NCBI GenBank assembly: GCA_964199315.1
Contig: OZ116699.1
Location: 25,544,001-25,608,000, forward strand
Source of the DNA: Orbicella franksi
Lineage: Eukaryota
DNA: 64,000 bases
Direction of reading: 5' to 3'
Numbering within the stretch: the first letter of the stretch is position 1; every line of letters starts with the position of its first letter. Below the pieces are notes generated by a model, which worked only from the letters and a program-made list of their open reading frames with translations, was not told the DNA's origin and searched no databases. The position numbers and the translations under genes were made by a program. Below are positions 3,101 through 45,786 of the stretch, piece by piece.

Positions 3101-6100
3101 CGTTCCGATATCACCAAGTGAAACAACTTTGTAGCTGTTCAAGTCAAAGAAACTGTTGGAAAAAGAATTTAAAATGCCTCAAAGAGAAGGTAAGCAGTTC
3201 ATAACGAATAACATCGATTCGCATTCCATCGAATGAGACTCTCAAACTTTGGGGTGCTGAGACTGCGCAGTACGGTGGACTGTTTTAAAAGGTAACGACC
3301 GCAAATCATGCCGAATTCTCTTCTGCAAGTGTTACTCAGGGGCATTAGAGAAAACAAACCTGTTTATCTTGGCATTTCGTTGTTCAATTATTATCGTATT
3401 TTGTATCTCACGTACCTCAAAACCAACATTATCGTTCCATTGCCTAGATGCACCCAAGCCTTCTTGTTAACAGCTACCAGCTGATGGATTTTCGTGTCGA
3501 TTGAATTTATAATGAATGTGTCCGGGAGCCAGAGCTTGTTTGTTGCGTCTCCGCTAAGTATTATAGTTTTGTTAAGACCGAATCCTAGTCGAGGATCTCG
3601 CCAGAACTGCCCCATGTATAAGTCAACTGAAAATTCCTAGTGAGAGATTGAACGGTATGACTTTTAAGAATGGATCGAGAAGTGGTCAGTAGCTTAAGTG
3701 AGTGAATCTATCAAAAGCTTTGGCTTCTGTCCATGGCAATGTTTTTTAAGACATTGAATTAATATTCTAGTTGCATTTAGTCTGGAAGTCAAATTAGAAT
3801 CCAAACAACACTAGAACATGGGCAGTTAACCTTGTTAAGACGGCAAATGAGATTACGATACAAAGGGAATCGAATCCACATAATCATGCTTCGAAGCAAT
3901 TAAAAAAAAAATCACAGTTAATGCGTCATTCATACTTTCGACTTGATCATACATCCCTTGATAATGTAAGAACTTTTTAAGAGAAGTGTTGATATATCGA
4001 GTCAGTTACATTCAAAGCAAAGTAAAATAAACAAAAATATCTCAAGCATGTTAAGGCAGCCAATGGCTCCTCCACTGGCAATTTTAGGATTTTAAGAAAT
4101 ATTTAAACGTTGCTTTGCTCTAACAACCACCAAAACTTCAGGAAAAATGCATTTTAGGGTGCTTAAATCTGTGAAAGTTTAACTATTATTGGTCACGTGA
4201 TTTTTGGGCAAGATTTGCAAACTCAAACTAAAAGCAAACCATCGAATCTTGTTTGACTTACCGCGTAGCAACTCCTTCTGTCCTGTATGGAATGACATCT
4301 ATTATTATTAAGAAGCTTTTAAGTAATAAGGCATGTCACGTGACCTACTTTGTATAATATCCTTTTAAATCAAGATCGAGATAATATCCTTTTAAATCAA
4401 GATCGTAGTAGGTACTTGATAAGTACCTCGGCGTGCATCTGGACCCGACACTTAATTTTGAAACTCATTTTCAAAAAATTTACAAGAAGGCAGCAGGAAG
4501 AGTGAACCTCTTACGGCGCATCCGTTCCAGTATTGATACTTTTACTGCCCAACGAATTTACCAATCGATGATTATGCCAATATTTACGTATTGCGGCTAT
4601 ACTAGTCTTGGATGGTCAGAGTCCCGCAAACGCATGATCCGCTCCATTGAGACCCGAAGCCTCGAAATCATTTCCCCAAAATGCAGTTCGCAGAACTGTG
4701 ATCTTCGATTTTTAACTGTTGATAACTTTTTACAAAAAAGAGCGTGCTGCTTTGTATTTGACTGCCTTAATGGAACTGCATGCTTTCCATTTAAAGACTA
4801 TTTTCACCGATTACATCATAATGCTTTAAACACTCGCAACAATGGGAAAACTGCAAAACTACCAACTGTCAGACTGGATTTTTAGGTGCCTCGATTTTTA
4901 ATTTATTGCCTTTAAGTTTAAGAAACATTAATTCTAGAGTTTTATTTAGGAAAGCCTTAGACGATTATTACTTGTAATTTCTATTGTATTTTTAACGGTT
5001 TTTAATATGTATCTTATTTTATATATCTTAATAATTCTTGTTTATTAGTTTTTAATTGTCAGCAGGACCCCGTTGATAACAGTACTTTGTACTGAAGGGT
5101 TATCCTGAGGAAATATTCGATTATTATTATTATTATTATTATTATTAGTCAACCATACGGAGCACATTTATAAAAAGGCTTGTCCTATAATGACAGACAC
5201 ACTGCGTTTGATATTCATAATTCATCCTCTTGACAGCCCATTTTTAACTTTCTTTTTGTTGGGACAAAAAGAAAAAAAACAGACAACAGGTCATATGACC
5301 AAAATTATTTTACACCGTAAGCCATAAATCAGTTAAGGTTAACAGGGCTTATGAAGCTGCAAAGTTTCAAAGTTCTTTTGCTACATTTTCGCACAGCTTT
5401 GAGCGCTTTGAGAATTTATGCAAATTAGGTCTTGAGCCATACCTTAACATGCTTTAGAATAACGTAAATGAGTGGAAAAACATCAAAGAAGCAATGACTA
5501 ACATAAAAAAAAAAAAACCGACAAATAAATAAATAGATAGAAGAGTTTCACCGTGAACGTTAATTCTCTAGGCTTATTTTTCCGAAAATGTAGCTTGTCT
5601 AAAGCCTATGGGTCGATCCTTACCATATTGGTTTCACTTAGTTCTCCAAAGGACAGGATAAGTAAATCCATTTGGACATCTAGTGTCTTAACTACAATAA
5701 AACATCGTAAGTTGTGTTATTAGGATATCGTCGTCTCAAGTCGGGCGGGTTTCATTGAATATAATATTATTTACTTTCCACCTTCAGTTTTCATTCCCAT
5801 CTTTAGTAGGCATTTTTCCTTTTTCATGTCCTTTTATTATGTTGTTGTGCCCTGGTGAAAGGACAAAATGCCTTCTTCCCTGTTTTAGCTAGTTCTTACC
5901 ACACACAATTTCTTAAAAGGTGCCTCGAACGATCGCACGGGACAACACTGTTATAAATTGTCAGAAATATTGTACAATTACGGAGGTTTCAAGCTCAGTG
6001 TTGAAGATTTATGACCTACCGTCATAAAAGGGTCTAATTCGCTTATCATAGGTTTTGAACACGGCATCTAACAGGCGTGACATGTCTTTCCCCGCCAAAG

Positions 6101-8337: not shown

Positions 8338-11300
8338 CTTGGAAGGTTGTAAATTAATTCTAAGGCTATAGCCGGTGCAGCTAAATTGGATACAAAAGAA
8401 ATAAACACCGTTAATGAGGCTATAAAGATCCCTTTTTACACTTCATAACTTTCGAGACCCAAAAATGATCTTAATCTACTTTCTCCTCACAATTTCAATG
8501 CAAAGTGCAGCACAGAAGTGAAAAGAGTTGAGGATTTTATCACCAAAGACAAATGGTGTTGATCGGTGAATCATTTCTGGTATTAATTATGAATAAATAT
8601 ATGCTAAATTTAAACAGGGCCCCTATGGATACCAGCCTTTAAGCTGAACGGGCTACCCTGTTTAAAAAAAGTTTACTTTACTACAGAGAAGAGTGGTTAA
8701 ATGTTGATGGTGCAGTGATAACCAAAATAACTTGAAAGCTAGGTCTTGTAAAGCTGTCAGTTCTGCATCATCATACGTCTTGTAAAGTTTAAAAGCCTGA
8801 CTAGACCCAAAGGCACCACGGCCGCTAACAATTACGCCCTCTCTTAGAGCTATCTTCTTTTCGAAACACAGATCAGCTTTGTTTTAATGTGTGACTGGTA
8901 ATTTGTTTTGCACAACTGAGACCAAAAACATAGGCCAACAAAGAAACCTATGGCGGCATGTGTTTATAATAAAGAACTTATTTTTCTCTAGAGCGAAGCA
9001 CAAGCACAGCACCTACGCTTGAAAAACATTCGAATGACAGATGTTCAAACTCCAAAGTATCGGCTTCTTTCTAAAGCGTATCAAGAAAACCGGCTCAACA
9101 TTGATAACAATAGGTATTGTTGTAAGACCTAAAATTGGTCTTATATGGTCATTTTGAACAATGGCGGTATAAGCTTCTAAATGCCCGCGGGAGTTTTTGA
9201 AATTTCCGATTACCGTACGAGCGCGGAATTTAAACGATCGGAAAGACTGAACGGAAGACAAATTCTCCTGAGGGGAAATGGTATTGGTATAATCCTGTCG
9301 GTGCAAATAGTTGCGCTGGGGTGGCTGGTGGGGTGGCGGTTGTACACATGTATTTAAAAGTGAAAGTAAAAGCTGCCGACAAGTAAGGCATCTTTTTGCT
9401 TTAAAATTGCTCTAACCTGGTAGACTCACCACGCGTGGAAGTGAAAGTGAAGTTCGCATTTGGCTAGATTGCGAACAGGCTCTCTTTCGCTCGTAAACCC
9501 ATAAGATCAGTGTAGGATGAACGCGAAAAGAGCGAGCGTGATAATCGAGCGGCAAAGCCGCTCGCTTCGTGCTCCCGCTGTTTCCGCGTTCGACCCACGG
9601 ATTGAAAAGCAGGAGGAGAGACTGCTTTCAGTCGAGCATTCGGCCAGAGATTAATAGCTCTTAACAGCGCTTCGAAGCTCGCGCGTCTTTCCTCCCCGAC
9701 CGATTGATGTCCACAGCGATTTCTAGCGGAAAGAAATCAGGGAAAAAATAATTAAAATTACAGACGCGATGTTTTGGGTAGCGTTTCTCTGCTCTTTAAT
9801 AATTTTCCCTTTACTCTCAACGTATTTTTTTGTGAATCATGACTCCGCCGTTCTAGATTTGTTTACTAAAATTGAGTTCATTCAAATGCCGCGCTTCATT
9901 CATCAGGTTAAGTGTTCTTGTGCTGTTTCCGAAATAAGAAATAATGTTTATGAGCTGTTATTTTTCTCACATCTAATGATCAGAAACCAATATAATTACG
10001 GACAAAATACAACACCCTGCTCGGGTGTAGGTGTGTGTCAGTTCTTTTTATGTAAATGTGCGATTTTCCAGTTACGCACTGAATTCATGATGAATGTGGT
10101 CAGTAATTAAATGAGTTTGACATGTCGTGTCTTCCTCGGATAAGGTCTCAGAAATGAGTGGTTAACTCAAACAAGCCTTTCCTCATTAAGTGCTAATTAG
10201 CAAAGTGCACACTGAAAGTGTGCCAATGGGGTAGAGTTAGATTATGCACAATGATTCTTATTTTCCTTAACCACTTGTCAGCGTTTTTATAAAACAGCTC
10301 GTGCTAACCAGTATCAAAGCTTTAATTATCAAAATGTGTGTGTTGAAATTGCACATAGTACACATTGCCATCATGCCAGTGACGGTAGACAATGACACTG
10401 TTATTTCCCTGACCGCTTATCAGGGTTCAGTTTATAACACTGGTCTTGCAGATCCTATAATGTTTTATAATATACGATAAATAAATATTCACTTTAGAAA
10501 ATGCATGCTATAAGTAAAAGGTTCTTATTGGCAAACGATAAAATGAGACAAAAGAATTTGGTAAGGTGTAAAGGTCAATAAAGGAAGACTTATCTGGATT
10601 GAACCGGTCTGTTTAAAGATGGGAAGAGAGACATTCGATAAAATGCGTTCCAAACTCAATTATGTTCAATTTCAATAAATTAAAGTAAAATGCTCTTTGC
10701 TGTTTTGTTTGTTCGTTTCTTGTTTTGTCACAAAACCTTAATTTGTCATCGCCAATTAACAATGGTACATTGATACCTGCTATTACAAATATGCTATTTA
10801 TGATACTTTTGTTAGGTTAGTACATGTGTTCACTATTGTATAAAACTCTCACGTTAATTTGGGTTAGTATATTTTTATCCCTTTTAAGCTCCTGCCATAC
10901 CACTTCACTCTCTCTTGATAGGCATCATCACGGCCTTTCCAGGTCTTTCCAGAATAGTGCATGTTGTTGTAACTGTAAGTTCATTTAAGAGCTTAGATAA
11001 ATTACTCCTTATGATGAAAGAATTAATTCACAAGCTTGGAAGTGACATTCATGAGACGAATTCCCGCGTATTTATGCTTTTTGATTATCTATGAGCTGCC
11101 TCAACATAGTGCCTGTAAGATCTCTGATTACGGTGAAAGAAGTTTCGGGGCAGCAAAGTTCAATTCGAATCCCCCTCCCCCTGACACTGCTCATGTTGCC
11201 CTTTCTGGGATATCGTGGAATAACCACTTGAACTTGCACAAATAAAGTCATATAATCCGACGTTGCAAAGCTGCATACCACAGGTATGACACTTTCAGTT

Positions 11301-22800: not shown

Positions 22801-25230
22801 AAGTGGAGTAAAGTGATTCAACACAAAAAGTAACGAGGTCAATCAGCACTGTCACGGTATATTTTGGTGTTGTGGCTGATCATGAGCTTCTAAACCTACT
22901 GTGCATGATTAAATTCATCGCCTTTCTACCTTGTATTTAGTCTCTTATGCAAGATGGCAGGACATTTACACATGAATGGGCGTAATATTCATGGTGCTAT
23001 TCGCTTTTCGTTACCATGGATGTGCTTGGAAGTCAGTCACTCTGAGACAGATACAAAGCAGCAATAAGTCCGAAAACTTCTAACTCGATTGAAGCACCGT
23101 TTTGATACAAACTAAAAGATCTGGATAAATCTATTACTCTGAATCCCGTAAACCCTCACAACTAGTTAGGTGTGCTTGTAAATCTACAGTGACAGAAAAG
23201 TAAGTAAGCGAGATCTGAAGCCAGATCGAATTGCTTTATTTCACTTGAATTTTAAACATGCTGGATTGCAATATTTTCCACATTTAATTCTTGACTTGCA
23301 GTGCACGGAATAGGACGAATCTGAAGCGAGTCCTGAAGTCGCTTGCCTCCATCATCAAACAAAACGTGGTACACAGCTTTCTTATAGCACTTATTGTTGT
23401 GAGAAATCCTCTTGTGCGTGACTACACTAGGGTAATACCTGGTTCTTCCAGGCCAGAAACCAATTACACGTTGACCAGCGTGGACCTTACTGTAACATGC
23501 AGGGTGATCGAGTATTACTGCTGTCGAGTCAATCTTAGGTAAAGTGATGGTGTCTCCATCATCATAACTGATGAATACGGTCGTGTAGGTGGCACTTGTA
23601 ACGAATCCGCGATAGTATAGACCGTTTTTCCAGCGGGCAAACACTCTGGCGCCCACTGGAAGTGAAAAAAATGGGATATTAGTTGATGCTGGTCGTTGCA
23701 AATGGCAAGCAAAATTTTTCAGGTCACGTTTGACTGGTAACTAAAACAGGTAAATTTTGGGAAAAACATTTTGTAAAAGAAATAAAAACATTTATCGCTA
23801 AATTTGCTTTGGACGAGTTTAGAATGCCAAATGGCTAAATTGGATATTTATCGATACAGTTTTCGCAGATACCCTTGTGTTATCGTATGTATGCATGGTT
23901 CCTGTGAATCATGGACGTGGGTCTATACTGACCTTCATGAGCTGAGAAGTGATCAGGAAAAATCCTTAGCTGACTGACAGCATAATAGTCCTCGTCGTTG
24001 TTATCAAAAGTGACTTTGAAACGGTTACCAGAATGTTTATCAGACACGTAACCAATGAAGAACGTGTTGCCTCCTTCCCATGTTGCTACCACGTGGTGTC
24101 CAATGTCTACGTCATGAGGTACCTTATCGGGAATTACCGCTGAAATGTCTGAGACTCTGTGAATGATCGTGTCACTGTCGTCAAACAAAACTTTCACCTG
24201 GCCAATTCCAATTGATAACACTTTCCCAGGGTAATAAAGGTTGTTCGTCCAACGGGCAATAATCCGATCATCAACTGTAAAGTAAAGAACGATGACAACT
24301 ATAACATAGCGGAAAAGTTAAGACCCCGGCTTGGAGGGAGGGGGGGGGGTGCTTGTCGTACCTTATTGGGGTTAAAAGAGCGTTTTGAGGGTCAGGATAC
24401 CTCTTAGGGGGTTCAGCCTCGAAAGGTCTACAGCGGAGCTTTTGCGGTACCTTTTAGGGTATTTGGCCGATAAAATATGGCAGGAGATAATGGGCCTGTG
24501 TCGTTTTAGAATTGATACCTCTTAGCGGTGAAAAAAAAAAAAAAAAAAAAAACTAAAAGCCACGCCAAAAACTAGGATCTTGGTATCTCTTAGAGGTTCA
24601 TTTCAAAATTTCGCACGAGCACCCTCTTCCTTTTTTTTCTTGAAACCTCAGATACGCTCGATGAACTCAAGCGGCGAGGTCATTTTGTTCGATTAGTATA
24701 CCTTTTAAGTTCGCGTAGTCACAATTTCCTATATAATTCTTCCAAAGCAAATACCAAAGTCGCCAGCCTAAGAAGCGTCAGACGGAAACCACTCTAAGAC
24801 GGACAACGGACACTTTGAAACCGTCAAAGAACACTTGAGAAGTGCTTTTTCTAGTGAAAAATACTTCAGAACGGAAAGGTAGATACTGAATGGTACAGCA
24901 GATTACAATTTGAAGAGCCAAATGCGTTTCCTAAAACAAAAAGATGGCATATGAGTTATCCAGTTTTCAATTGGTTATCTTTTCATATACTGAAAAGGCT
25001 GCACGTAACAAGCAAATACCTAAAATAACAATTAAAAAATACCATGCACTTTCCATTAAACGGATTCGAAAGTGCAAAGACGATTGAAACAAAGTAAAGG
25101 ACCAACAGAACTTGTTTCATGGTTGCAAATGTTGCCTGTGTAAAGGAACAAAAAGCTAAGACGCATCAGAGCAGAATTCATACAGGAAAATGTAAAACTA
25201 AATAGGGGAAAGGTGCCAAACATGTCATAT
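16883..25230. repeat. Tandem segmental duplication, copy 1
   Basis: Collinear and roughly 90% similar by eye to 26816-33730, from atgttcctgaaaactgtgagc (16883/26816) to ccaaacatgtcatatg (~25230/~33722); ~18.2-21.1 kb is specific to copy 1. Confidence 0.9.
23252..25120 (-). pseudogene. Secreted four-Tudor-domain protein, copy 1, probably pseudogene (first donor GT>GA)
   Basis: Exons 25120-25054, 24767-24702, 24274-23933, 23655-23252 match copy 2 in size and phase with open frames, but the intron after exon 1 starts GA (25053-25052) rather than GT; substitutions at otherwise repeated positions (YYPG>YYPS, FDDGD>FDDGG). Confidence 0.65.
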
Positions 25231-29308: not shown

Positions 29309-31754
29309 GGTATATATACAGGTATACTTGATTGTATTGTTAAACTCCCTGAAGAAGTGTGCGCTAGTCACACGAAACGCGTAGGGGAAAATAAAAAAGT
29401 TTTACAACTCAAGTAGTTCGCAGACGTGCTGCTCACTGGTTTTACTTTAAAAAATTTAAAAACAATTTCCGTTGGAGTAAAAGTGACGATGACAAGAATT
29501 AATTTTCAAGCATTCGTTGGAACAAACGTACTGGACCATTTTAAAGTAAATACACTCTTAATGTTTTCGCAAAAGTGAGCCTTAGTTTTACATATTTTGC
29601 AATGCACTAGGGACACCTGTACACGGTATGAAAGAAAACGATGTATTAACAACATTTATTCCGAAAATTATAACTGGAGTAATTAAAGGATTTCACTTTT
29701 AGTTTATTAGTTTTAACCAGTTCTATCTATTATTGCTACTTTTAGCAGTTGACCCAAGATCCAAGAACTGCGCGTTACATTATTTGCTTTCTGTGAAATT
29801 TGGTGCGTGACGAAAGGAAAGATGAATACGACTCTAATCAAAAGCCATTATTTTCAACATCGACAAAAACATTTAACACGACTAAATTATCGATGTTTAT
29901 TATTACCAAAGAAAAATTAACTTCATCTTGGCCATAGCTACGTTTCCCAATAAAACCCCCCAGAAAAATAATTGGGAAAAATTAACACTCGTGGAAATTT
30001 GGCGCCAAACAATTTGGCCGCGGCTTGTTAGGATTTATTTTCTCGACTGTTTGGTGATTCACTCACTTCACCCTGACACTTTCACTCCGCTATAAAATAA
30101 GCATGTGTAAAATTGAAGTTTGAGTTTCTCTGTATGCCTGTCGTCGGGCTTCATACGTTCATCGCCAGTTCAACTTTAACGAGGCTCGGTGAGGCGAAAA
30201 TGGCGAAGCCCACGAAGATTTGATTGACGGCAGCGAAAAACGCAAAACGGTCGGTCGAGAATTGAATTTTTGAGTTCGCGTAAAGTGCGAAGTGCAGTCA
30301 AGTCGGGCTACTTCTTGTAACGGTTCACCTCGATACCAAATTTATTTACTCAGTCGTAGTCTGATATACTGAAAATAACAAGCTCGTGAATGAAAATGGT
30401 GCGTATCGTTCCTGCTACGCAATGCTAACACGATTTTAGTTTGCAATTACTGCCAGAGGTATTAAACAAAACTGTATTATAAAACTGAGTCAAACGTACG
30501 TCAGGATCTATGGTAAAGCGGATGACTGATGGCCCAAGGGGTTGGCAATCATTTCGGTGGATAAAGCGAAAACCGAATACAGATGCCAAGGTGATAGCAT
30601 GCAGATCTTTTGTTCAAAACATCCGATCTCCTGTCAGCGCTCAGTGAAAAATAATGAAATAACAAATTGTCGTAGAAACTGAATTATTTTACCTTTCAAT
30701 GTAGCATCTTCCCTCAGATTCTTGGAATTTCCATGAAAAAATAAAATAAAAACAGCAACACAGACACTGCTTGTTTCTGTCAATCTGAGTGCGGTAAAAA
30801 GCATTGTCAAAATGAAACTTGTGAAAAGACTTTTGCACTTCGGTACCACGGCTGCAGACAGAATTTCCTGTAAACAATAGGCTAAGTGCTAAACAACACA
30901 AGTTACCGATGAGTTGCGTTCATTGCTTAAAACGTTGTCACCTTGTGCTCTTCTGGCTCTTGTCAAAATGTACTCCTTAGTTCCTGTTTTCTCTACTTTC
31001 TTGGCTTCTCCTATGGTGTCTGATAATTGATAACAGCGCTCACGTCAAAGCAAACTTCCAAGTAAAAAAGGTACCTAGGGAGGCGGGGATTTAATAACGT
31101 TCACTAATTGTCATTAGATAAGCTACTTTTGACGCATAAATAACGTTTGCACAGCCCTGATTATATTGCTTTCAAAGTTCAAAATGCGAATCTACTTTAA
31201 ACTACGTCCTACTTTACAGGTTAATTTCAAGAAAAAGAAAAAAAAAATAGATAGAGTAAAAACTTGGATTTAGTTTGGCTAAAACTGGTGATAAAACGTC
31301 GCGATTTTCTCTTCAACACAAAAAGTAACGAGGTCAATCAACATTGTCATGGTATACTTTGGTTTCGTGGCTGATCATGAGCTTCTAAACCTACTGTGCA
31401 TGATTACATTCATCGCCTTTCTACCTTGAGTTTACTTTCTTATGCAAGATGGCAAAGACATTTAAACATGAATGGGCGTAATATTCATGGTGCTATTCGC
31501 TTTTCGTTACCATGGATGCCCTTGGAAGTCAGTCACTTAGACAGATATAAAGCAGCAATAAGTCCGACAATTTCTAACTCGATTGAAACATTGTCTTTTG
31601 ATACAAACTAAAAGATCTGGATAAATCTATTACTCTAAATCCCGTAAACGTTCACAACTAGTTAGGTGTGCTTCCAAAATCTACAGTGAAAGAAAGTAAG
31701 CAAGATCTGAAGCCAGAATTACTTTATTTCACTTGAATTTCAAACATGCTGGAT

Positions 31755-33612
31755 TCAAATATTTTGTACATTCAATTCTTGACTTGCAGTGCACGGAATA
31801 AGACGAATCTGGAGCGAGTCTTGAAGTCGCTTGTCTCCGTCATCAAACAACACGTGGTACACAGCTTTCTCATGGCAGTTATTGTTGACAGAAATCCTCT
31901 TGTGTGTCACCACACCAGGGTAATACCTGGTTCTTCCAGGCCAGAAACCAATTACACGTTGACCAGCGTGGACCTCACTGTAACATGCAGGGTGATCGAG
32001 TATTACTGCTGTCGGGTCAATCCTGTGTAAAGTGATGGTGTCTCCATCATCATAACTGATGAACACGGTCGTGGAGGTGGCACTTGTAACGAATCCGCGA
32101 TAGTATAGACCGTTTTTCCAGCGGGCAAACACTCTGGCACCCACTGGAAGTGTAAAAATGGGATATTAGTTGATGCTGGTCGCTGCAAATGGCAAGCAAA
32201 CTTTTTCAGGTCGCGTTTGACTGGCACTTAAAAAAGGCAAATTTTGGGAAAAAGATTTTGTAAAGGAAATGAAAATATTTATCGCTGAATTTGCTTTGGA
32301 CGAGCTTAGAATGCTAAATGGCTAAACTGAATATTTATGGATGCAGTGTTAGCAGATACCCTTGTGTTATCGTAGGTATGAATGGTTCCTGTGAATCATG
32401 GACAAGGGTCTGTACTGACCTTCATGAGATGACCAGTGCTCAGGAAAAATCCTTAGCTGACTGACAGCGTAATAGTCCTCGTCGTTGTCATCAAAAGTGA
32501 CTTTGAAACGGTTACCAGAATCTTTTTCAGACACGTAACCAATGAAATACGTGTTGCCTCCTTTCCATGTTGCTACCACGTGGTGTCCAATGTCTACGTC
32601 ATGAGGCACCTTATCGGGAATTACCGCTGAAATGTCCGAGACTCTGTGAATAATCGTGTCATTGTCGTCAAACGAAATATTCACCAGGCCATTTCCAATT
32701 GATAACACTTTCCCAGGGTAATAAAGGTTGTTCGTCCAACGGGCAATAATCCGATCATCAACTGTAAAGTAAAGAACGATACCAACTATAACACAGCTAG
32801 CAAGTTAAAACGCCACTTTATAAGGAGTAGCTGACAGACCTCGACTAGTACCTCGCTTTTACCCAGCAAAGATCCAGCTCAAAGCAAGGAAGACAGAAAG
32901 ATTTCGCCATTTGGATCAATATTTAGTACCCACAGTTTTACGCCAGCGTTGGAAAATTCACTTAAGCAGTTATGTCATTCGTCCTCATAGAAACTAGAAA
33001 TCTCTCCATGAAACCTTAGATACGTTCGATGAACTCGAGCAGTGAGGTCGATTTGTTTGATCAGCATACCTTCGAAGTTCGCATAACCACAATTTGTCAT
33101 ATACTTCCTCCAAAGGAAATACCAAAGTCGCCAGCCTAAGAAGCATCCTGGTTTTATATACAGTCAACTTTACAAGACGGACACGTGGTTCTGGTCCCTG
33201 CCGCTTTTCCGTCATTTTACTGTGACTGAATTCCCTATAAGACGGACATCTCTCTAAGACGGACAACGGACACTTTGAAACCGTCAAAGAACATTCTAGA
33301 AGTGCTTTTCCCCGTGAAAAATTCTTCAGTACGGAAACGTATAAACTCAGTGTTACAGCAAATTACAATTTGAGGAGCCAAAATGCTTTTCCTAAGACAA
33401 AAAGATGACAAACATGTGTGCGCTATCAAATTTTCATTTAGTTATCTTTTCCCATTTATACGATTTGGTGATGACAATACAAATTATACTAAAAAAAGCT
33501 GCATGCATCAAGCAAATGCCTAAAATAAAAAATAAACCCACTTACCATTAAACGCATTCGAAAGTGCAGAAACGCTTAAAGCAAAGTAAAGGACCAACAG
33601 AACCTGCTTCAT
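31755..33612 (-). CDS. Secreted protein with four Tudor-like repeats, 287 aa, copy 2 (intact)
   Basis: Exons 33612-33546 (MKQVLLVLYFALSVSALSNAFN, preceded by caaccATG), 33135-33070, 32761-32420, 32143-31755; all phase-1 GT-AG, 864 nt. Repeats: IIARWTNNLYYPGKV..SFDDND; VVATWKGGNTYFIGYV..TFDDND; VFARWKNGLYYRGFV..SYDDGD; VIGFWPGRTRYYPGVV..LFDDGD. Confidence 0.85.
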
Positions 33613-34187
33613 GGTTGTGAATGTTGCCTGTGTAAAGGAGCAAGGAGCCAGAGTGCGTCAGAGCATAATCCATACAGGAAACTGTAAAACTAAATAGTGG
33701 AATTGTGCCAAACATGTCATATGCGACCGACAAGTTAGGAGATTTCATTTCACATTAACGGATGCAAAACAAAAGAACCGTTAAGTAGATTGTGAAACAT
33801 ATCAGATGTAAATTGATCCACAACACTTCAACAGCGGGGCAAGGGTGACCTCAATTTTAGAAAGCGAAAAGTGGAAAGGAAAAATATAAACACCACAAGG
33901 CCAGTGTGAGCTAGCTCCCAAGTTCTTAATATTCCTTTTAGGAATGTGGGGTATTTTTCGCTAGTATTTTGGTACGCGCTAGCTTTTAGAATGCACAGGT
34001 CGTATTCGACGTATTCATATGCCAAATTTCTGTTACTCAAACCACAAGTTATATTATGTTACCTCTCTAAATAGCCTGTTAGTCATTTCCTGTACGGTAA
34101 AAAAGCATCCTTCGATGAATAAAGAACTCCTGTTTCACTTAGCTTGTTAGCATGTAGGAATCTTGGCACGGGAAATTGTGGTTAAGC

Positions 34188-34599: not shown

Positions 34600-35531
34600 G
34601 GTTAAGCCCAATGCATGTTTATGCTTTGGTTCACAGGATACTGAGGATATGACATAGTGTTAGCGCATCAAGAAATTGCCAGTAGCAAGCTAGTTTAAGT
34701 CAGTTACACACAAGCCTTCGCACCAGCAGTTGTTCTGAAGCAAGCAATTTTCAAGTCAAGTCTTAGTTGACCTCAAGTCCTTGTTACTTTCACCCTTTTT
34801 TGCTTTACGTAGTAAATTTGTTTGTTATCAAATTGCATTTTGTCTGTAGTTTACATAACAACACCGAATCTAACCTGGTCACACCAGCTTACACCAATTT
34901 TCAACAGAGAGCGAAACAAAATATAACGGTAACAAACACAGTAATGAAAACCGGCTTCCTTTATAAAAACAGACTGCAAAAGAATTGGACATAAAAATCA
35001 TAGCGCACGTTTAAGTCAATTTAGTGAACAGAAAACAAAGTGAACATAAAGTATACGTACATACAAAAAGTAAATCACTGCCTTCCTAATGCCTTCGTCG
35101 ATTCTGGCCATTTTTGCTCCATACAGTGCAGCTTCTTCCTTTAGTCGGTGTTGCTCTTCTGGCCGTAGTGTGCAAACACAGACTCAAATCAAAACAGCTT
35201 CGCGAGAAATGGTCACTGAAGTCAAAGACCCACAGTACTGGCTTATTGATTGATTAGTTTAGTCACTAATTTTATTTTATGGTCTGTTTTCATAAGTCAT
35301 TCGTCTTGAATTCTTAAAAGACTGACAAGTGAAATGTCAAAAAATGATTAATAACTAGGACTAATTTGCGATGCGGTCATGTTTTTAGTAGGACAGAGAA
35401 AAAATGTTTTTGCCTGGTTATCAGCAAGTAACTAGTACTCATTTGCAACACTCCACAGACATATAAGAAAGCACGAGGACTCTATCAAAAGGTGCCTTTG
35501 CCTTCTTAACACGGTATGTACTTAAAATTCC

Positions 35532-38500
35532 TTATTGTTCTTCATGCATTTGCCTTGCCTCTGTAATTGCTTTGGTTATCAGTTTCAAATTGTCCTTTGT
35601 CATTTCTCTAAGCACATCTAAGTCTTCCTTTATCTTCTTTACCAGGTTAGCGCATGCGAGCGTTTGTCTGTACCTTTCCCTATCTACCTTACGCAGGACG
35701 TCTTCGCCTTCTTTTTCAACATCTAAACCTGCCAGCTTTGTGAATTCTGTTTGAGTATCATTAAACAAATCTTCAAATTCCCTAAAATTGGCTAGGATAT
35801 TATCTCTCAGTCTTCGAAATTGCACTGTTGAGTCTTTTAGATCACGGTTGATGACCGCCATCTTGCCATCGCTTGCTGCAGCGTATGACTGCTTGCTCTT
35901 AGCGTTACTCGATACGACGTCCATCTGACCAAGAATCTCCACCCCTTCACTGCCAGCTGAAGTCATCTAATAAAATAACGGGAAAATGGAACGCAACATT
36001 GTGAGTGTTTTTGTAACTGCTTCAAATGAGTCTCTTGTCTAGGTTTCGCAAGACTTTTTGCCTCTGTATGAACTGTTTTCTACAAAATAATGCGATAGGA
36101 TGTCGAGTGCACATGATCACTTCAATAGCCAACCCTCCTAAGAAAGATAGAAACCCGGTAAATTGGACAAAATGGTTTCGTAAATTTAGATTAAGCTGAG
36201 AAAAGGTGGTCCCTAAAAGCTTCTTTTCAAAGAATAAACAACCAATGCAGAAAGCAAGCAAGGAACTCCTGACCCGGTTGGCTAGCATTCGAAAAACATT
36301 TCTAGTTGATTCTATTGTAGCTTCATTTTGAATTCTCCTGATTCTTTTTGGTGTGAACCAAGTGACCAACGCTGTCATTATTTTTGGTATCTTGTGTTAA
36401 AATGTAAAGTACATAAGAGGGTTTATTAGGCATCACAAACTCGCTTCAGCCTGGTTATCGACAAATCTCTACTGACAAGCAATTCCACGGACTCGTTATA
36501 AATACGCCTTGAGAAGTCTACTGTGAGAAGGGTCATTCGCGTATTTTTCAGCGAATACACATCACATTTTACCCTGAAATCCTTACCTTGGCTAACACTT
36601 GAACTCCGTGTTGACCCATCCCTACGTAAGGGTAAAGTTGTTTTGTTGTTTTGTCACACTCTATCAGCAACTCTTTATCTGTCACCTGGTCTCCATTCAA
36701 GCAAAATACAACTGGTACCTTGCCGTTAGATTCCATTTCGAACTTAAGAATGCAACCAATCAGATCACCTCGATTCACCACAGGAACTAAAGGAAGAGAA
36801 CAGAGAGCAAGAAACTCTCAACAACGACAACAATGGACAAGTAACCAAATTATCATCTTTACTGGTGTTATATTTTTATGCCCCATTTATTGATCACTGA
36901 TTTGTAGTATGCTATTTTAGATTTTCCACTAGATTGACCCATGGATACATAATAAATGGAACCAACTAAATGTGATATAACCGAATACCTATGGTTGGCT
37001 GGGCTCATTGACAATCTCAGATATTGATTGACACAATTTAGTGGACTACGTTTGATTGTTGGCGCAACGAAAATGCTAACGAGTGAAGCTGTATATAGGT
37101 ACTTAACAGAAGATGGATGGATTCCTCTATTTCGCTACGTGGAAAATTTTACCGTACCTTCAATTAATCTGCGTGTTGTTAAGTCTTCATTTCCGCCATC
37201 GACAATATTTCCATCCGCGTGATAGGCCACGCTACCAGTATAGCATCCAGGTCTCAAATGAAAATCGTATCCCTTTCGCACCACGCCGACTTCGAGAAAC
37301 CTGTTTCTACCAGTTTCTAGGACTAGAACCTAAGGTGGTAAGGAAGCCACAAGACACAAGCCAAGTTAAACGAGAGTACTCAGTGAGAAAATCAAACAAA
37401 CACCGAACAAAACACACAAAAAGTATTTTCATTCCTACCTCAAAGTGTGGGAAGTCCTTGGAGAACGGAAAAACGTATCTGGCACCATGATGCAATAGTG
37501 ATGCTGTTGATTGTGGAGAAGTCTCACAAACCTCACAACTTTTGACTCCCTCGTACAGGAGAAGGCAGTCCCTCACCTTTACACCCATGCTATGCCACGC
37601 CTGTAATGATGTAAACAAAAAAAAGTTACCAAACAGGAAAAACATGTTTCTAGTACAATGCAGTCTGCTTTGACATTAAGCAAAACCCGATGCTACCTTT
37701 TGGCCTGTCGCTAGAATATCTTGGCGAGCCAGGAATGCTCTCTGCGCAGTTTGATTGGCAATTCGACGATTACCCTCAGCTTCCAAAAACAACTGGTCCA
37801 TCTTCCCTTCCTCTATAAAAAACAAACAAAAGAGAAAACTTTCTGTGGCTAGATATAATTCATTTCACACAACGCAGTTCATTTTATTTAGGTATATTTG
37901 AAAAGACGAGAGGACATTTGTAATTGTTTAAAGCAGATGTCGGTTTTGTCACGTTCTTCTGCTTATATTTCTTCTGTAAAATTTAATTGACACTATGTCT
38001 TTGGGCCACTACATTAAGGACCACATTAACAAAAAATGAAAAAAGAGCTGTCCAACACAGATAAAACTCCATCCACATCTAAAATATAATCGTCATTAAC
38101 AGCAAAAACTAGGTGTTATCTCCTCGTTGTACCTACCTGTTTGAGGAAACGAAAAGCCATAAGCTGCAAAATAACTAGTTTGAAGCTTTTCAATAACTTC
38201 ATCCAGCTCTTTAGTCTGGAAGAAATGAGAAAAGCGACAATAGTAGGTCTCTAACACGCATCCCTCTTCTTCGTCGATAAGAACTACGGTAAGAAATTAC
38301 CCTAAAAGCACATTGGTAAAGACGACCTAGACCTAGAATTCTACGTTTCAAGAAATTGACACGATCAATTTACTTTCTGTAAAAAAAGAACAGAAAAGCA
38401 TCAAGAAAAAAGACCCTTGCAGAATACGCAGATAAATGGTCAGAGCAGCTTATATTTTAAGAGATAGAAATGCTGTGATCATTTCAATCTATAAGATATA

Positions 38501-41500
38501 CAAGTCAGAATCGCCGGGCACGCTAAAAACTTACGTGCCGTACAGCAGAAGTCGGGATGTCTGGATGTCCTTTGCAGCACCTTCTACATTTCTTCCACAA
38601 CCACCAAACCCCCATAACAAGACTGGACACAAGGTTTAGTGGCACAGGTATTGGATCATACGAGCTGTACGTCTGGATTGTGATGGCTTTCTTGAACTTC
38701 CATTCCATTAAAGAATTGTCCTTAAAATAGCCAGCAAGTACTATAGTGTAAGCTCAAGACAGTTGACAAACTTCGATATTTTCACAGATCACTGTTTTTT
38801 CAAATAAATCTTACAAACTCAGTAAATGAAATACATTAAAAAATCTAAAATAAATCACATTTCATCTGACTGAATTGAACAAGAAAGAACCAAACAACAA
38901 TACAACTGCTTTAAACCAAATTGGAAACCTGAATAACGTTCGACTCAGTGTCATGTCCAGGGACTTTGAGTTCCGTAATTTTTAAGAGCTGTATTCGAAG
39001 TCTGCCGCTATTGGTGACCTGAACTACCTTTAAGAGTACTTTCAGACACTAATTGGCCCTCTGTTATCTTGATATAGTTAACTGGAATCAATCATGTTAA
39101 TCACTAGTTTAGACCTGCGAGCAGGCTATTTATAGGCACGCCACTAACACTGACGAAACGAATGCAACAAACAAACATAACATGGCTATAAATCTGAAGG
39201 AACACCAGCTGGTTATTTACAAAGCGTCATCAAGGAGTTGATCCCGGTGGAGGTCTTGTAAGCGCTACAAATCACTGTCCCATGCTAACTCCACAATAAG
39301 CATTGAAGCAAAGCAGGAACTGAAAGTTTCTTACTTCCACACGCTGGTAAGTGTTGGATAAAAGAGCTATCATCATGTTAACAAGAAGAATGACACCCAC
39401 GACCAGGAAAATACCATACAACAAGTGAGCAAGCGTCACCGTCGCACTGTCAACTGATTCAAGCGTCTCCAGTTCCGCTATTCCAAGCAACGACCAGCAG
39501 AGGTGTTTTACCACGGTCCACCAGCTGAGAGGAGACACCAAAAGACAGAAGGTGAACTCACTTTTGTGACTATAATCAGTGTAAAAAAGTGGAGGTAAAC
39601 GAGGATAGAAGAGCAATTATTGCCTGACTTACCAAGTTTTTAAAAAAAACAACAACAAAAAAACAACACATTCATTTAATCATAGCAACACTTACATGAC
39701 TCAAACTTATATTATATGTCATTACTTACAATTTTCTTAGGTCTGAATTTATAAAGATGTTAAAGGCAAAAGTGTCTTTTTTTTTTAGCATTTTTCAAAA
39801 AAAAAAAATTCATTTTAAATACGAAAACTTCCAATTTCAGTCGGAGCCCTGTAAGACCCGACTTCACTCCACTGTGACCACCTCACACCTCTCCCTGACT
39901 TACCAGGTTGGTCCAGACGTACTGCACACCCTAAAAAAAAGGAAGTACTTGAATCAGTAAATCACAAATTCATGTTCTCTGTTATAGCTAGTCAATTTGC
40001 CAGGCAGTGATAAAATATATCGCTTTTGTTCTTAAGTCGCTTCTAACATTTTCAGGGCTCTTTCACCTACCCGCCTGTCAGTTGCTTTTACCTATACGGT
40101 TGCTTTCCAACTTTGCCTCAGCACCACGTGACAAGGAAAAGCTTCATATAATTGAACAGCTAAAACCTGTAAGAAGTCAGGTTCTAAACTTCTTACAAGT
40201 CTTAGCTGTTTTAACTTGAACTCAGGTCAAAACCCGACTTCTTACAATAGAAGTAAATGCTAATTGATGTTAAGCCGTAGAAATGTAAAATGTCAGTAGT
40301 CTACACAGTTAACACTTTGAGTGCCATTTACCAATTTTTAACCAATCTTTTGCATTCGCTTGCTATTACCTGCCAGTCTTGCTTCTGGTATGACGTTAAA
40401 GAAATGATCTCCTTTAACATACCTAACATAAAAAAATACACTTACGGGATACCATCATATTTTTCTGTGATAAACGACTTCTCCGACATGTACACTTTCG
40501 TGATTGCGAACGAGAAGGCGATGACAATCGCGACAAACTGCCAAAATATCGTTGCAATGTCTCTGATGATACTGAACAAGGCGATTTGAATGGTTCCAAG
40601 CCCTTTTACTGTCTCCATCAGCTGACCAAATACTCTGAAAGTGAGGATCATAGTATTGAGGCCATACAAGTAGCCAGCTATGACAAGGGATCGATTGTTT
40701 ACCACGAATTTGGATGAAGACCACGTGACCATTCTCAGCAGAAACGTGCAGGTGTAGACGAACATAGTGATAAGGTCCAAACAGTTCCAGGTATCTCTGA
40801 TGTGAGAAGGTGAGAAAGATTTAGTAGATGCAATATGTCAAGTCTAACTGCAGAGTTAACCGAAAAGACCCTACTACACATAGTTACAAACGATTATTCC
40901 GTTAGTGTTAATTAATTAAGGTAATTATTATCGGAAATACATTCAAAACTAAATCATGAGGAAAATTATGGTTTATAACCCCCTAAGCCCAGACATCTAT
41001 TGGCTTTTCATCATTCTTTTTTCTGAAAACCAAATACAAACGGAGCTTATTTAACCTTGCTTGCTTCTTATTACAACTGGCTCTCATCGGGGGTGTTTTG
41101 TATTGGGCCAAATAATTAGGTCAGTGAATGGCTTTTAGAAAACGTATCACAATAATATAGAACATTTAGATGTAATCAACTTACTTTGTGTTAATTTGTT
41201 AGCAGCATTTGACTTAAACATAGGGCTATCGGAAACTGTTCTACCTCTCGCAGTTATTCAAAGTGAATACCATTTACCTGGTGAACTTCTTCAATTTCTT
41301 TAAAGCAATAATCGCTACGTTTTTACAAGGAGAAGCACACTTCTTTACACGCTTGACTTCAACTTTGTTATCCTTTTGCTTCTCACTTTGATGATGGAGT
41401 TCATCTAGCTCTGTGAGCAAGTCGTCAATCTCTTCCTGGTTGGCGTCTTTCAAGTCAAAGATTTTAATTTTATCTTTATTTCCTTGTCCCACTTGCACCT

Positions 41501-44500
41501 TTATTACGCAGAATTGCTTAATTTCCATCACCATTCGGCCCACGAAGAAGATCAGGATAGCCCACTCTTGTTCGCTGAATTCAACGCTTGTTGGACTGAG
41601 ACAAATGGACAAATGGAGTCCAAGTAAGGCCAGATAACTCAACGTGTCACGGATAAATAGGAAGTAAGGTGTAGTGAAATATTCTCGATACGTCTCTGTG
41701 GAAATAAAATACGAACACACACAAAAAGGCGCGACTGAATTCTTATTACAACGCCCAAGGCCTTATGAGTCCTATGAAGCCAAGGACGGATGGATAACCA
41801 TAAAGCACCATGAATCAGCGATAATTCCGCTACAAACGATATCTATTTGGTCAACCACCTTTTCAAACTAAGCTTAGTCGTTGACTGGCGCAGCGGAAAA
41901 TCTTCTTTGGCATAGGATAGTGTTAGGTAGCTATGTTCACAAATGTCAAGATGCTGACAAAAGAAATCTGTCTGAAGTTCAAACGTGACAGACTTTATCT
42001 AGGTGTCTTTTATGTTATAAATGTACGCAATAAGTTTTTTAACATGGCAATTTTACTATAAATTGTGATCGAAACGACTCTCAAAGCCGTTTTAACTTTG
42101 GGTAAAAATAAGAAATAGAAACTTACCATAAAGGTCGATTTTACATCGTTCTGCGATGAAAAACAAAAATTCTTTAAGTTTGTCTAGCCACACGACCAGT
42201 ATCGCAGGAATGCCTAACAACAGCTTGGTTTGCTACAAAATAACCCCATGTTTTCCAACTCGCGGCTCTTACTTGCTGCAGAGGACCCAGCTGACGCAAA
42301 GCAATAGAGAATAAAAGGACAAAAAAACGAGGAAAACAATGAAAACAATAGGTTTGTGAGGCGCAATCTATTGTGACGTGTTCTTTGTCTTCTACATCAA
42401 GAAGGAGCCCAACTCATTGCCAGTCTTGGGTGTCAAGGTTTGCCTCAAAGGCTAGCACTTATGGCCGAACAAGAATGAGTTCAAAGAAAGCGATATCTCC
42501 TCTAGCCATCTTCGCTCGTCAAGAATACATGCACAAGAAACCATGGTTTTGCTGCAGATTTGGCGTCATCAACGCATTCTCTTTCAAATGATATCTCAGT
42601 TCTTCGACATTATTCTCAGAAGCAATTTCCTGAAACATTCTCTACTTATGTACAAATGTATTGAAAAAAAAAAAAATCTAATGTAAAACAAACTCCAACC
42701 TGAATAAGCCTTGTTTATTTACTATGGAGAGTGTTATTGAGAGACCAAAGAAAAAGTAAGACAACTGGTTGTTCCTGTTTACCATTAACAACGTTTATTG
42801 ATTGTTTTAAAGTAGTTTGAAATCTGGAGTTCAAAAATTACCTGTACTGTTACTCCACTTTGCCCTCCCAAGGTGGATAAGGTAAAGGACAATGAAAACA
42901 ATTGGAAATAGCACCAAATCAAACAAACACCATAAGTCAAGAAACATCCATTTCCACCGTCCAATGCTGAGATAAGATGGCGTCCACATTTCACCAAGTT
43001 CACCATACCACTTGTCATTGTTAAGATTATCAATTACTGGATGGGTGAAAAACTGGAAAGTAACAATAAATAGAAAATGTTTAGTAACTGGAAGAATGCT
43101 GCGCGCGTTCGGCTTCCCGTCCAGGGTCACATGCATAAAATGTTTGATTTTTGCAGATTGTAGGTTGCAGAGTGCATCTACAGTACTGTAGATGCATCTC
43201 TGAGATGCATAAACAGATGCATCTACAGCACTACGAGTGAGCAAGACTGTTTTGGAGCCAAATATTAAGAAATTATATTTTAAAGAAAGCTTAGTTTTGG
43301 CAAGCCAAGGTTAATTAACAAGAGTGGAACTCTCAATTCTTGAATGAACGCCTCTTTCGTTTTCCTTGGAAACGTTTCTTTCTAGAATCTTTCTTCGGAC
43401 GCTCACGTGTGTACATGTCTGTGTCGTTCTTGCGACCTTAGCTTATACTTCCCCTAGATAGATCCACGGTTAGCTGTCGCTAAAGATTATAATATTTTTT
43501 CTAGTTGGTTAATCTCGGCTTGAATTATCAAGTCAGCTGCGTTCGTTTAGGATTTACATCTGAATACTTTGTTTTGTGCCACCTGATTTACCTTTGGCTT
43601 GAGTCCCGGGCGTAACTAGAGTTAGCATAAAAGTGAGTTCATTGGAAAGTTGTATTAAGCAGAGGAAGTAAGCATAGTGGAAGACGTAGAAGTCCCGAAG
43701 AATAAAGATTAAGTCTCAGAGTCTCGATACCTCTCGTTGGTCAGTCGTTAGTCTCCTACAAAACTATTGTCATAAGATGCCAGTCGCAAGTCAATTCAAT
43801 TCCCCTCCAGTCTTTCAAGCATGGGTTCCCCTTGGGCACACTTACCCATACGTGTCCAACGGGTGAAGAGGGACATTAAGAGTCAAGCGTATTGCCCCAG
43901 CAGACTACTTTTGGATTGTTATAACGAATCAATAGGTTCCACGCATAGCTCACTTTCTAAGGTAACAAAAAGACGATTTGTAATCACCGACCTTCTTTTG
44001 CCCAAGCTCAATAGCAGTTTCCATGACTTCATCAAAGCACTGCTTGAACTGTAAACGGCACTTTATGTCAGATTTTAAGGGGTTCATCAGACAGTTAGTG
44101 AATTCCTCCACAGAGGACGCTAATTTTTCCTCATCTTCAAAGTTTGGTAACCTCCTGTCCGCCAAAGAGCGAAGTTCGTAACTCACCTTGGTGTTAAAAA
44201 CAATAACAAATGAAAAATCTTTAATTTTTGTAGAGAAACACTTACTTACCCAACTGAAGTGCTATTATTACCGTCGAGCTTCTAAAAATAAAGTTAACCT
44301 TTGTGTTACTCTTAAATAACTGACAGAACATACTGTCTTTTTTCGATTAGCTTCGATTAAAGCTCATGCGTTGGGGTTAAGGTAACACTTTTATTTATTT
44401 ATTTATTTACTTATTGATCGATTCATTTATTTACAACACTTTCGAATCACAATTATCGCCTGCCTGACAATCAGCAAGATGAAATCTTTATTCACTAACA

Positions 44501-45786
44501 CTTTCACCATCACTGCTTTTCAAATTCAGTAGGTAATAAAACAAAAAGGCACAGACACGGTTGGGATTAAGATAGTTTTGTGGAGTTGAAATGAAGCGTA
44601 AAGTTACCGCAGATTACATGCAGCATGATTGAACTAAAATCATCCCAGTAACTATACTAGCCTAATTGTATGAGCTTTGATAGGAGCTTTCAGAATTGTT
44701 TAGACTTGAGCTTCGTAGTTTATTGGTTGTTTGGATAGTCATCGAGTGAGTCTTGTGATTCAAATACCCGCAAGCCGCACATATAGTTTTTTCCTCCAAG
44801 TTATTTGCCTTCGCGCGTTAATAATTCTTTACCCTAGAACAACTGCTTGCATTGGTGGTCATGTTTGCGTTGTCTAATGTCTTTTTCCTGTTTAGGCGTT
44901 GATTCTCGAAGGGTGAACATTTTATTAGTAAGTCCTATTCATTTGCGGGAGTCGCATGAAAGTGTCTGGGTTAGTGTCCTGTAAAGATGTTGAATCCACC
45001 AAAGTCAGTCGTCCGATATAACCAAACATGCCTACTTCAAAGAGGGTATGCATTTGCTAGTCAATCCGAAAGATTATTGTGCAAGTCAGAAGACGTAATC
45101 CAGCAAATAAAACTAGATTCTTGTTTCCTCTCGTAACTTACATCGAGCGCTCAAAAAGTTATACAAAAGTCTTACCAATGATGTCTTGATTTTGGTATGA
45201 GATAATGCACTGGTTTTCAGTTCTGGATCAAAGAGGAGTTGTGAGAATATGATGGACTCACCAGCATTGACATCTGCATAGCGTTCTTCTCGCATTTTGT
45301 AAATGCCTTTGGTGTGATTTTCTCACTGATTTCAAGGAAGTTGCCTTTCCTTATGGTCTTTATCAGCGACTCCTCGAAAGCTGGGTAGACATCAGTCAAA
45401 TGTAAGAGGTTATAAATGAATACTGATATATTTGATACATAAGGTTTTCAGAAGTTATTTCTACCATGGTTTGGAGGATAATTCCTATCTCAAGCCTCGC
45501 GTACACATTTAGGAACAAACATAGTGTTAAAAGAAGAAAAAAAGTAAGGTACATGTTGTTGAAGAGGTCTTATTAAGTAATTGGACCTTTTGAACCGAAA
45601 TACCAACTTTGCCGGATTGGTAATAATGCATCACCAAGAAAAGAAAATTAGCAATGTTAAAAGCGCTGCTCTGCTACTACCTCTCTTTTTTGGCCTTTCA
45701 CTTTCACTTTCGCTGCACGTTGTATCGCCGTCTTGTCCATTGCCGGCGAGACTCTCACATTCTACCTCAATGTCTGAAGCAGTCAT
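35532..45786 (-). CDS. TRP cation channel (TRPC/TRPM-like core, no ankyrin repeats) fused to a C-terminal SPRY domain and coiled coil, ~1002 aa
   Basis: Exons (minus): 45786-45681, 45380-45262, 44186-43992, 43052-42842, 42290-42273, 42150-42127, 41695-41278, 40796-40446, 39930-39904, 39524-39335, 38720-38535, 38215-38137, 37812-37697, 37600-37439, 37329-37158, 36786-36587, 35966-35532; GT-AG, phases compatible, 3009 nt. S3 DTWNCLD, pore LCWSLLG, S6 LVNMMIALLSNTY, TRP box EWKFKKA, SPRY FEVLVLETG..EVGVV..PGCYTGSVAYHADG..GDLIGC..LYPYVGM. Confidence 0.9.
43159..43760 (+). mobile_element. Possible solo LTR in a TRP intron
   Basis: ~600 bp bounded by tgtagg..cctaca (TG..CA inverted ends) with AATAAA at ~43701; no matching TSD found. 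Confidence 0.3.

Follow-up and report, generated by a model that had tools for sequence, protein, structure and literature searches.

The window analysed here, 64,000 nucleotides from the coral Orbicella franksi (GCA_964199315.1, contig OZ116699.1, forward-strand positions 25,544,001 to 25,608,000), contains no N runs and carries on its minus strand a gene whose coding sequence, read directly, begins with an ATG at 33612 and ends with a stop codon at 31755-31757 (Table 1). The corresponding Orbicella faveolata gene is RefSeq LOC110043570, whose 287-residue product, XP_020604698.1 (P0211), is named only as an "uncharacterized protein" and is one residue apart from the window; a search for literature on LOC110043570 or its orthologues found none. 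RNA contigs from four runs of four different studies, mapped on positions 31500-33800, show that the gene is real, spliced and expressed. The joint 32143|32420 is present in all four runs, and the joint 32761|33546, by which exon 1 passes directly to the first Tudor exon, in three runs (X1, X4 and X5) from three studies; contig depth over both Tudor exons exceeds that over the introns, by a factor that ranges from several-fold to above ten. RefSeq P0211 has the same exon model as the one derived from RNA, with its start placed at an upstream ATG at 35111.

Table 1. Features of the Tudor-domain gene and its tandem paralogue, with positions in the window and residue numbers of P0211.
Feature	Position	Strand	Remarks
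5' exon, spliced to 33627	35061..35330 (upstream limit unmapped)	-	From contig overhangs and RefSeq
Exon with signal-like segment	33546..33627	-	RNA contigs 33546-33627; 15 leader bases and conserved ATG 33612; coding part 33546-33612; GT donor in phase 1
W/Y-rich block of the first-pass annotation	33070..33135	-	66 bases, open, AG/GT flanks; treated as intron
First Tudor exon (module 1, barrels 1 and 2)	32420-32761	-	342 bases; symmetric, phase 1-1
Tudor barrel 1 (residues 46-100)	32595..32759	-	Cage W53, Y59, F75, D77, D79; model strands 48-93
Tudor barrel 2 (residues 101-158)	32421..32594	-	Cage W110, F117, F134, D136, D138
Terminal coding exon (module 2, barrels 3 and 4, stop)	31755-32143	-	Open frame; RNA joint
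Tudor barrel 3 (residues 160-215)	31974..32141	-	Cage W167, Y173, Y189, D191, D193; Cys212 in linker
Tudor barrel 4 (residues 216-287) and stop	31755..31973	-	Cage W226, Y233, F258, D260, D262; Cys248 in inserted loop
Tandem paralogue, gene B	23267..25120	-	Same exon plan; Tudor exons 88.5% identical in protein

One element of the first-pass annotation, a short W/Y-rich exon between the signal-like segment and the Tudor repeats, does not survive comparison with the transcripts, as the joint 32761|33546 bypasses it and no joint falls at 33070 or 33135. The block is also missing from RefSeq P0211, from the Oculina protein P0156, from P0208 and from the Montipora proteins. Where the tandem paralogue conserves it, it does so within a 139-base island of intron sequence reaching beyond both the block and its borders. 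A tryptophan-containing linker in the P0158 subfamily was considered as a homologous mini-exon and rejected, being encoded inside the signal-peptide exon (L013, this genome). We treat this segment as intron, and a rare isoform containing it is conceivable from the contigs.

At the protein level the two large exons are 36-37% identical to one another, with an E value of about 1e-13, and the Tudor repeats are therefore not a chance resemblance. Pfam and this exon self-match agree on the arrangement first proposed, four repeats of the motif W..YY.G.V ... (F/Y)DDxD with two in each large exon. The eukaryotic family DUF4537 (PF15057), for which the Pfam gathering cut-off is 27 bits, matches both modules along almost its whole length (profile positions 1-108 of 120), at 31.3 bits for module 1 and 39.6 bits for module 2; module 2 additionally exceeds the cut-offs of PF21744 (45.9 bits, its best score), PF18359 (40.5 bits) and PF18115 (38.2 bits). 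By name, the Tudor profiles above threshold include Tudor_3, BAHCC1-like Tudor and Tudor_5. A search for a published function of DUF4537 found none, the literature mentioning the family in passing only. We note that the strongest DUF4537 matches of this genome lie elsewhere, on contig C9.

Structure prediction points the same way. The AlphaFold model of the whole of P0211, built on 26 homologues, contains four five-stranded barrels (pLDDT 87.6, pTM 0.78), and module 2 modelled alone from the window's own sequence reaches a pLDDT of 90.3. Foldseek ranks Tudor, Agenet and MBT readers highest and, after them, the elongation factor SPT5 with its KOW domain, and a profile of the coral family searched against the PDB finds KDM4B (E 1.4e-7) and both barrels of the BAHCC1 tandem Tudor (E 3.5e-7). 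The predicted Tudor fold is therefore well supported. The first-pass annotation had likened the repeats to Tudor-1 of 53BP1, a likeness that holds for single barrels (Foldseek E about 1e-5; PF09038 at 27.0 bits for module 1, with a cut-off of 22) but not for the module as a whole, since PF09038 gives just 13.0 bits for module 2 and the module 2 model superimposes on 53BP1 structures with a TM score of only 0.38-0.40 and an rmsd of about 6.5 A, against 0.66-0.68 for BAHCC1 and SETDB1. In the models the packing of the barrel pairs is thus that of BAHCC1 and SETDB1 and not that of 53BP1.

The closest structural relatives are all tandem Tudors of chromatin readers. Structural alignment places SETDB1 (PF18359) first with a Z score of 13.7, followed by BAHCC1 at 12.8 (residues 154-277) and SGF29 (PF07039) at 12.5 (residues 40-153). 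SETDB1 and SGF29 provide the best structural match for each of the modules; they are nuclear readers of histone marks attached to enzymes or complexes, and their identity to the coral modules is only 11-24%. The BAHCC1 tandem Tudor (8ye8, PF21744) shares two packed five-stranded barrels with the coral module, with 115 residues aligned at 24% identity, and has the same W, Y, F, D, D cage including the sequence FDDGD. The proteins differ in setting: BAHCC1 is a large nuclear chromatin protein that reads H4K20me1 and has one ligand-binding barrel, whereas the coral protein is small, has an export-type N-terminus, two modules with a full cage in each of four barrels, and a pair of cysteines.

Translation from the ATG at 33612 gives a segment of about 20 residues resembling a signal peptide: basic residues come first, then a hydrophobic core 14 residues long, and Ser/Ala stand at positions -3/-1. 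The RNA contigs that end at 33627 run on into an exact match to 35061-35090, with AG and GT in place, and a 5' exon, which the first-pass annotation did not report, is therefore spliced to 33627, its donor lying directly after 35061. The frame is open from the 33627 side through this exon back to an in-frame stop at 35186, and within it lies the in-frame ATG at 35111, in good context, along with further ATGs that are out of frame. Because every sampled word of 35112-35330 (15 of 15) occurs in nine runs on record as RNA (data that give neither strand nor 5' ends, with introns also present at low depth), the upstream ATG is probably included in at least some transcripts. A start there would put 22 residues ahead of the signal-like segment, so that its hydrophobic core would occupy residues 26-39; the segment would then be buried behind a long N-region or would make a membrane anchor.

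In one alternative the protein is not exported at all: translation would begin at 35111, the hydrophobic stretch would serve as a membrane anchor or a buried helix, and the product would be an intracellular, possibly membrane-tethered, methyl-lysine reader. The RefSeq choice of start, the good context of that ATG, the presence of the upstream region in many RNA libraries, the modelling of residues 5-38 of P0211 as one long helix (at low confidence) and the nuclear location of all solved structural relatives are in keeping with it. Against it, the 22-residue extension is not conserved, as the Oculina orthologue P0156 has the downstream Met as its first residue and the extensions in the Montipora models are unrelated to it, and the out-of-frame ATGs in the leader are typical of untranslated leaders. 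In paralogues and orthologues the signal-like segment stands at the very beginning, the start at 33612 being the one used by both Oculina P0156 and the Logan ORF P0209, and the EGF fusion and cysteine pair described below also speak against an intracellular product. Even a type II anchor, given the distribution of charge, would put the barrels on the luminal side. We consider this alternative improbable.

The wider family favours export. Taking a 10-residue Kyte-Doolittle mean of at least 2.3 as the criterion, a strongly hydrophobic stretch precedes the first barrel in 23 of 26 aligned homologues and falls within the first 20 residues in 20, in most of which the first barrel begins some 10-20 residues later; those that carry a species name come from Orbicella, Montipora, Oculina and the octocoral Paramuricea. 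Homologue P0164 has an EGF domain (30.9 bits, cut-off 21.5) between the signal segment and the Tudor domains. Cys212 and Cys248 behave as a pair, being both present in 17 and both absent in 7 of the 26 homologues (raw counts, uncorrected for phylogeny). The exon with the signal-like segment ends in phase 1 and the first Tudor exon is symmetric, phase 1-1, which in metazoan exon shuffling is the usual arrangement for shuffled extracellular modules. The predicted mature protein is about 28 kDa with a pI of about 6, and the C-terminus of P0211 has neither a KDEL-like retention signal nor a hydrophobic anchor. There are no chromatin partner domains in the coral protein, and the export-type N-termini in most of the family together with the EGF fusion do not fit a nuclear or cytoplasmic chromatin or RNA context. 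The secretion originally proposed for this protein remains a prediction: an export-type segment is encoded in the transcripts and most homologues are alike in this, but the RefSeq start lies 22 residues further upstream. From these sequence features we regard export through the secretory pathway as likely.

The nearest named relatives outside the corals are the Nematostella vectensis 'Tudor domain-containing proteins' A7SWQ8, LOC5502812 and LOC5502073, in which the same module is repeated four times at 38% identity. Unlike the coral proteins they are without a signal-like N-terminus and without a Cys pair in the equivalent loop, while their termini are extended by additional regions and by a tail rich in Gly, Pro and Tyr; because of these features they look intracellular. 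More distant relatives occur as large multi-repeat proteins in an oomycete and in brown algae, and in fusions to BTB, kinase, EF-hand and FERM domains. We set these arrays and fusions aside as evidence on secretion, as they are ordinary intracellular Tudor arrays.

An architectural parallel comes from bacteria, whose chromo-like and Tudor-like proteins were surveyed by Kaur, Iyer, Subramanian and Aravind (2018, PMC5906684). These proteins are consistently secreted and carry two to six barrels in tandem; they have an aromatic cage, their cysteines suggest disulfides, and extracellular groups resembling methyl-lysine are their proposed ligands. In that account the Tudor and chromo-like domains of eukaryotes act as readers inside the cell, and consistent secretion is reported for the bacterial versions only (PMC5906684). 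The coral proteins are alike in architecture but differ in having genes with introns and in having cnidarian proteins as their closest relatives. We note also that some bacterial Tudor-like clusters match weakly in features and in fold; Protein Atlas feature matches all fall below 0.8 and are leads only. Since the coral genes have introns and the Nematostella relatives are closer, there is no need to invoke horizontal transfer of a secreted Tudor-like protein from bacteria. Our search of the literature for secreted or extracellular eukaryotic Tudor proteins, and for Tudor domains in the coral skeletal matrix, found nothing relevant. The coral family thus combines a known fold and Pfam family with an apparently extracellular location, a cellular context unusual for eukaryotes.

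Within the genome, 17 matching exons are found at about ten loci, mostly clustered on the same contig, and homologues of the family are present in other stony corals and in one octocoral. Of 244 aligned positions, 28 distinguish the tandem paralogue in the window, gene B, from the main gene: 27 are residue substitutions and one is the replaced stop. Between the two genes dS is 0.11, dN/dS is 0.46 and intron identity is 90%. Its exon 1 has a GA donor in place of GT, its stop codon is lost, and two cage aspartates are changed (D136N and D262G); gene B may be decaying or diverging. Some other family members have also lost individual cage aspartates. Elsewhere in this genome, a related Tudor-like exon lies 640 bases from exons encoding WSC domains, on the same strand.

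The cage itself is complete in all four barrels, each with five residues, W, Y/F, F/Y, D and D, that is, three aromatic residues and two aspartates. Each of the 20 cage positions is kept in 18-25 of the 26 homologues (with Y and F pooled at one alternating position), and the cage of barrel 1 in 23-24 of 26. That of barrel 4 aligns one to one with W1990, Y1998, F2020, D2022 and D2024 of BAHCC1, the FDDGD sequence being identical (alignment to 8ye8). The residue alignment to the BAHCC1 cage and the 26 homologues thus bear out the earlier suggestion that cage residues are conserved in every barrel, and from these alignments we infer that they lie together in space. Cage residues also help to define the Tudor fold, so that ligand binding is not proven by the fact that they are conserved.

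In a second alternative the protein is a secreted but general SH3-like scaffold for peptides, glycans or nucleic acids that does not recognise methyl or ammonium groups, and the cage residues are kept mainly for stability of the fold. SH3-fold barrels bind many types of ligand, and bacterial extracellular SH3 and chromo-like domains have been proposed to bind cell-wall peptides (PMC5906684); the loss of individual cage aspartates in some family members and in the tandem paralogue, as well as the proximity of a related module to WSC carbohydrate-binding domains, would also be in keeping with such a role. It accounts less readily for the retention of all five cage positions in four barrels across 18-25 of 26 homologues, including the aspartates that contact the ligand in BAHCC1, and we think it unlikely.

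What the cages might hold is suggested by the structure of BAHCC1 with H4K20me1, in which the methyl-lysine sits amid W1990, Y1998, F2020, D2022 and D2024, and the aspartate pair forms hydrogen bonds to the ammonium protons while higher methylation states are sterically shut out (PMC12219854). The presence of two aspartates per cage, as in BAHCC1, argues for coral cages suited to protonated or lightly methylated amines over quaternary cations.

In 53BP1, a Tyr is found where the coral barrels carry the second Asp, and the first barrel alone binds. Aromatic cages can also bind quaternary cations by cation-pi contacts, and such compounds are abundant in corals, which lends some appeal to the idea that the ligands of the exported cages are quaternary or sulfonium cations, with trimethyl-lysine, phosphocholine, betaines and DMSP as examples. 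Ligands of this kind (Kme3, choline, betaine and DMSP) had been put forward in the first-pass annotation and are now disfavoured: they offer no protons to the two carboxylates of the cage, and the corresponding aspartates of BAHCC1 exclude higher methylation (PMC12219854). We judge them very improbable ligands. Binding of an amine or methyl-lysine by the coral protein, drawn by analogy with BAHCC1, is itself a tentative proposal that falls somewhat short of an even chance.

We know of no extracellular methyl-lysine ligand in corals. The reading that we prefer, to which we give a probability of roughly one half, is that two tandem-Tudor modules stand behind an ER-targeting segment, and that the protein is exported and uses its cages to grip protonated or low-methyl ammonium groups with avid binding. 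The protein would enter the secretory pathway and either be released or expose its barrels on the luminal or extracellular side. Each cage would hold a protonated or lightly methylated ammonium group, of the kind found in mono- or dimethyl-lysine-like ligands and perhaps in plain lysine or amines, through cation-pi contacts and hydrogen bonds to both carboxylates in the manner of BAHCC1. Four cages per chain would confer avidity for repeated ligands and could cross-link or coat the surface displaying them, for which matrix or mucus proteins and microbial or symbiont surfaces are candidates. As to its origin, an intracellular cnidarian tandem-Tudor module, comparable to those of Nematostella, was most likely placed behind a signal-peptide exon in phase 1-1 arrangement, and gained a disulfide-type Cys pair.

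A broader proposition, possible though doubtful, is that in anthozoans a methyl-lysine reader of the chromatin type was redirected to the secretory pathway and grew into a larger family, yielding a tetravalent extracellular reader of low-methyl or protonated lysine-like groups. If this is true, such a protein could serve in pattern recognition or adhesion, directed to microbial or symbiont surfaces or to matrix proteins bearing such groups, and an animal would have a working 'methyl-lysine code' outside its cells. The biology of readers would then reach as far as the surface of the cells, or the mucus, in a reef-building coral. At about 28 kDa the protein is small and easily expressed, and would be suited to probing methylated and amine ligands outside animal cells. 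The identity of its ligand could bear on recognition between the coral and its microbes or symbionts, and any ligand found would also inform DUF4537, a family without an assigned function.

The gene that encodes two tandem-Tudor modules, one in each of its large exons, has a tandem paralogue on the same strand in which two of the aspartates of the aromatic cages are substituted, D136N in barrel 2 and D262G in barrel 4. The Tudor exons of the two copies share 88.5% identity (dS 0.11, dN/dS 0.46), the donor of exon 1 in the paralogue is GA rather than GT, and its stop codon is gone; this may be a copy in decay or divergence. The copies share an island of 139 bases in intron 1 at 84% identity (33009-33147 and 24641-24779), with no alignment of the intron sequence on either side of it, and within this island falls a W/Y-rich open block (33070-33135) that is skipped in assembled transcripts. 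One Logan contig (L001, run SRR6255878) represents a transcript in which intron 1 is kept but intron 2 has been removed, indicating that partly processed RNA of the four-Tudor gene is common in some libraries.

Coordinates of the paralogue, the 5' exon and the Tudor-like exon near WSC domains
Feature	Location	Strand	Remark
Tandem paralogue of the four-Tudor gene	window 23267-25120	minus	sequence comparison with the four-Tudor gene
5' exon of the four-Tudor gene	window 35061-35330	minus	several upstream ATGs
L014 exons: one tandem-Tudor-like, two WSC-domain	G000:C2:33049000-33058999; 9559-9939, 8541-8918, 3693-4082	minus	

Relatives with other architectures include three uncharacterised proteins of Nematostella vectensis (P0254, P0248 and P0250) that have four tandem-Tudor modules, a short non-Tudor region at each end and a Gly/Pro/Tyr-rich repeat tail, and in which a signal segment is absent. 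A fold search shows that the C-terminal module of A0A7D9EVM0 ('Histamine H2 receptor-like', 402 aa) resembles module 2 of the four-Tudor gene (43% identity, rmsd 1.7 A over 119 residues); the entry represents a fusion of a receptor with a Tudor module or, alternatively, two genes merged in one model. The Tudor-like exon of locus L014 is a more distant relative (30% identity, E 1.6e-11) that has lost part of its cage aspartates; two exons encoding WSC domains (67.6 and 67.0 bits) share its strand.

In the 5' exon of the four-Tudor gene, one upstream ATG, 11 bases ahead of the in-frame ATG at 35111, starts a short out-of-frame ORF, and the splice junction creates a further one. These ATGs suggest translational control or an ambiguous start codon. 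A channel gene (35532-45786) neighbours this exon at a distance of about 200-470 bases. The four-Tudor and channel genes may have a common promoter region.
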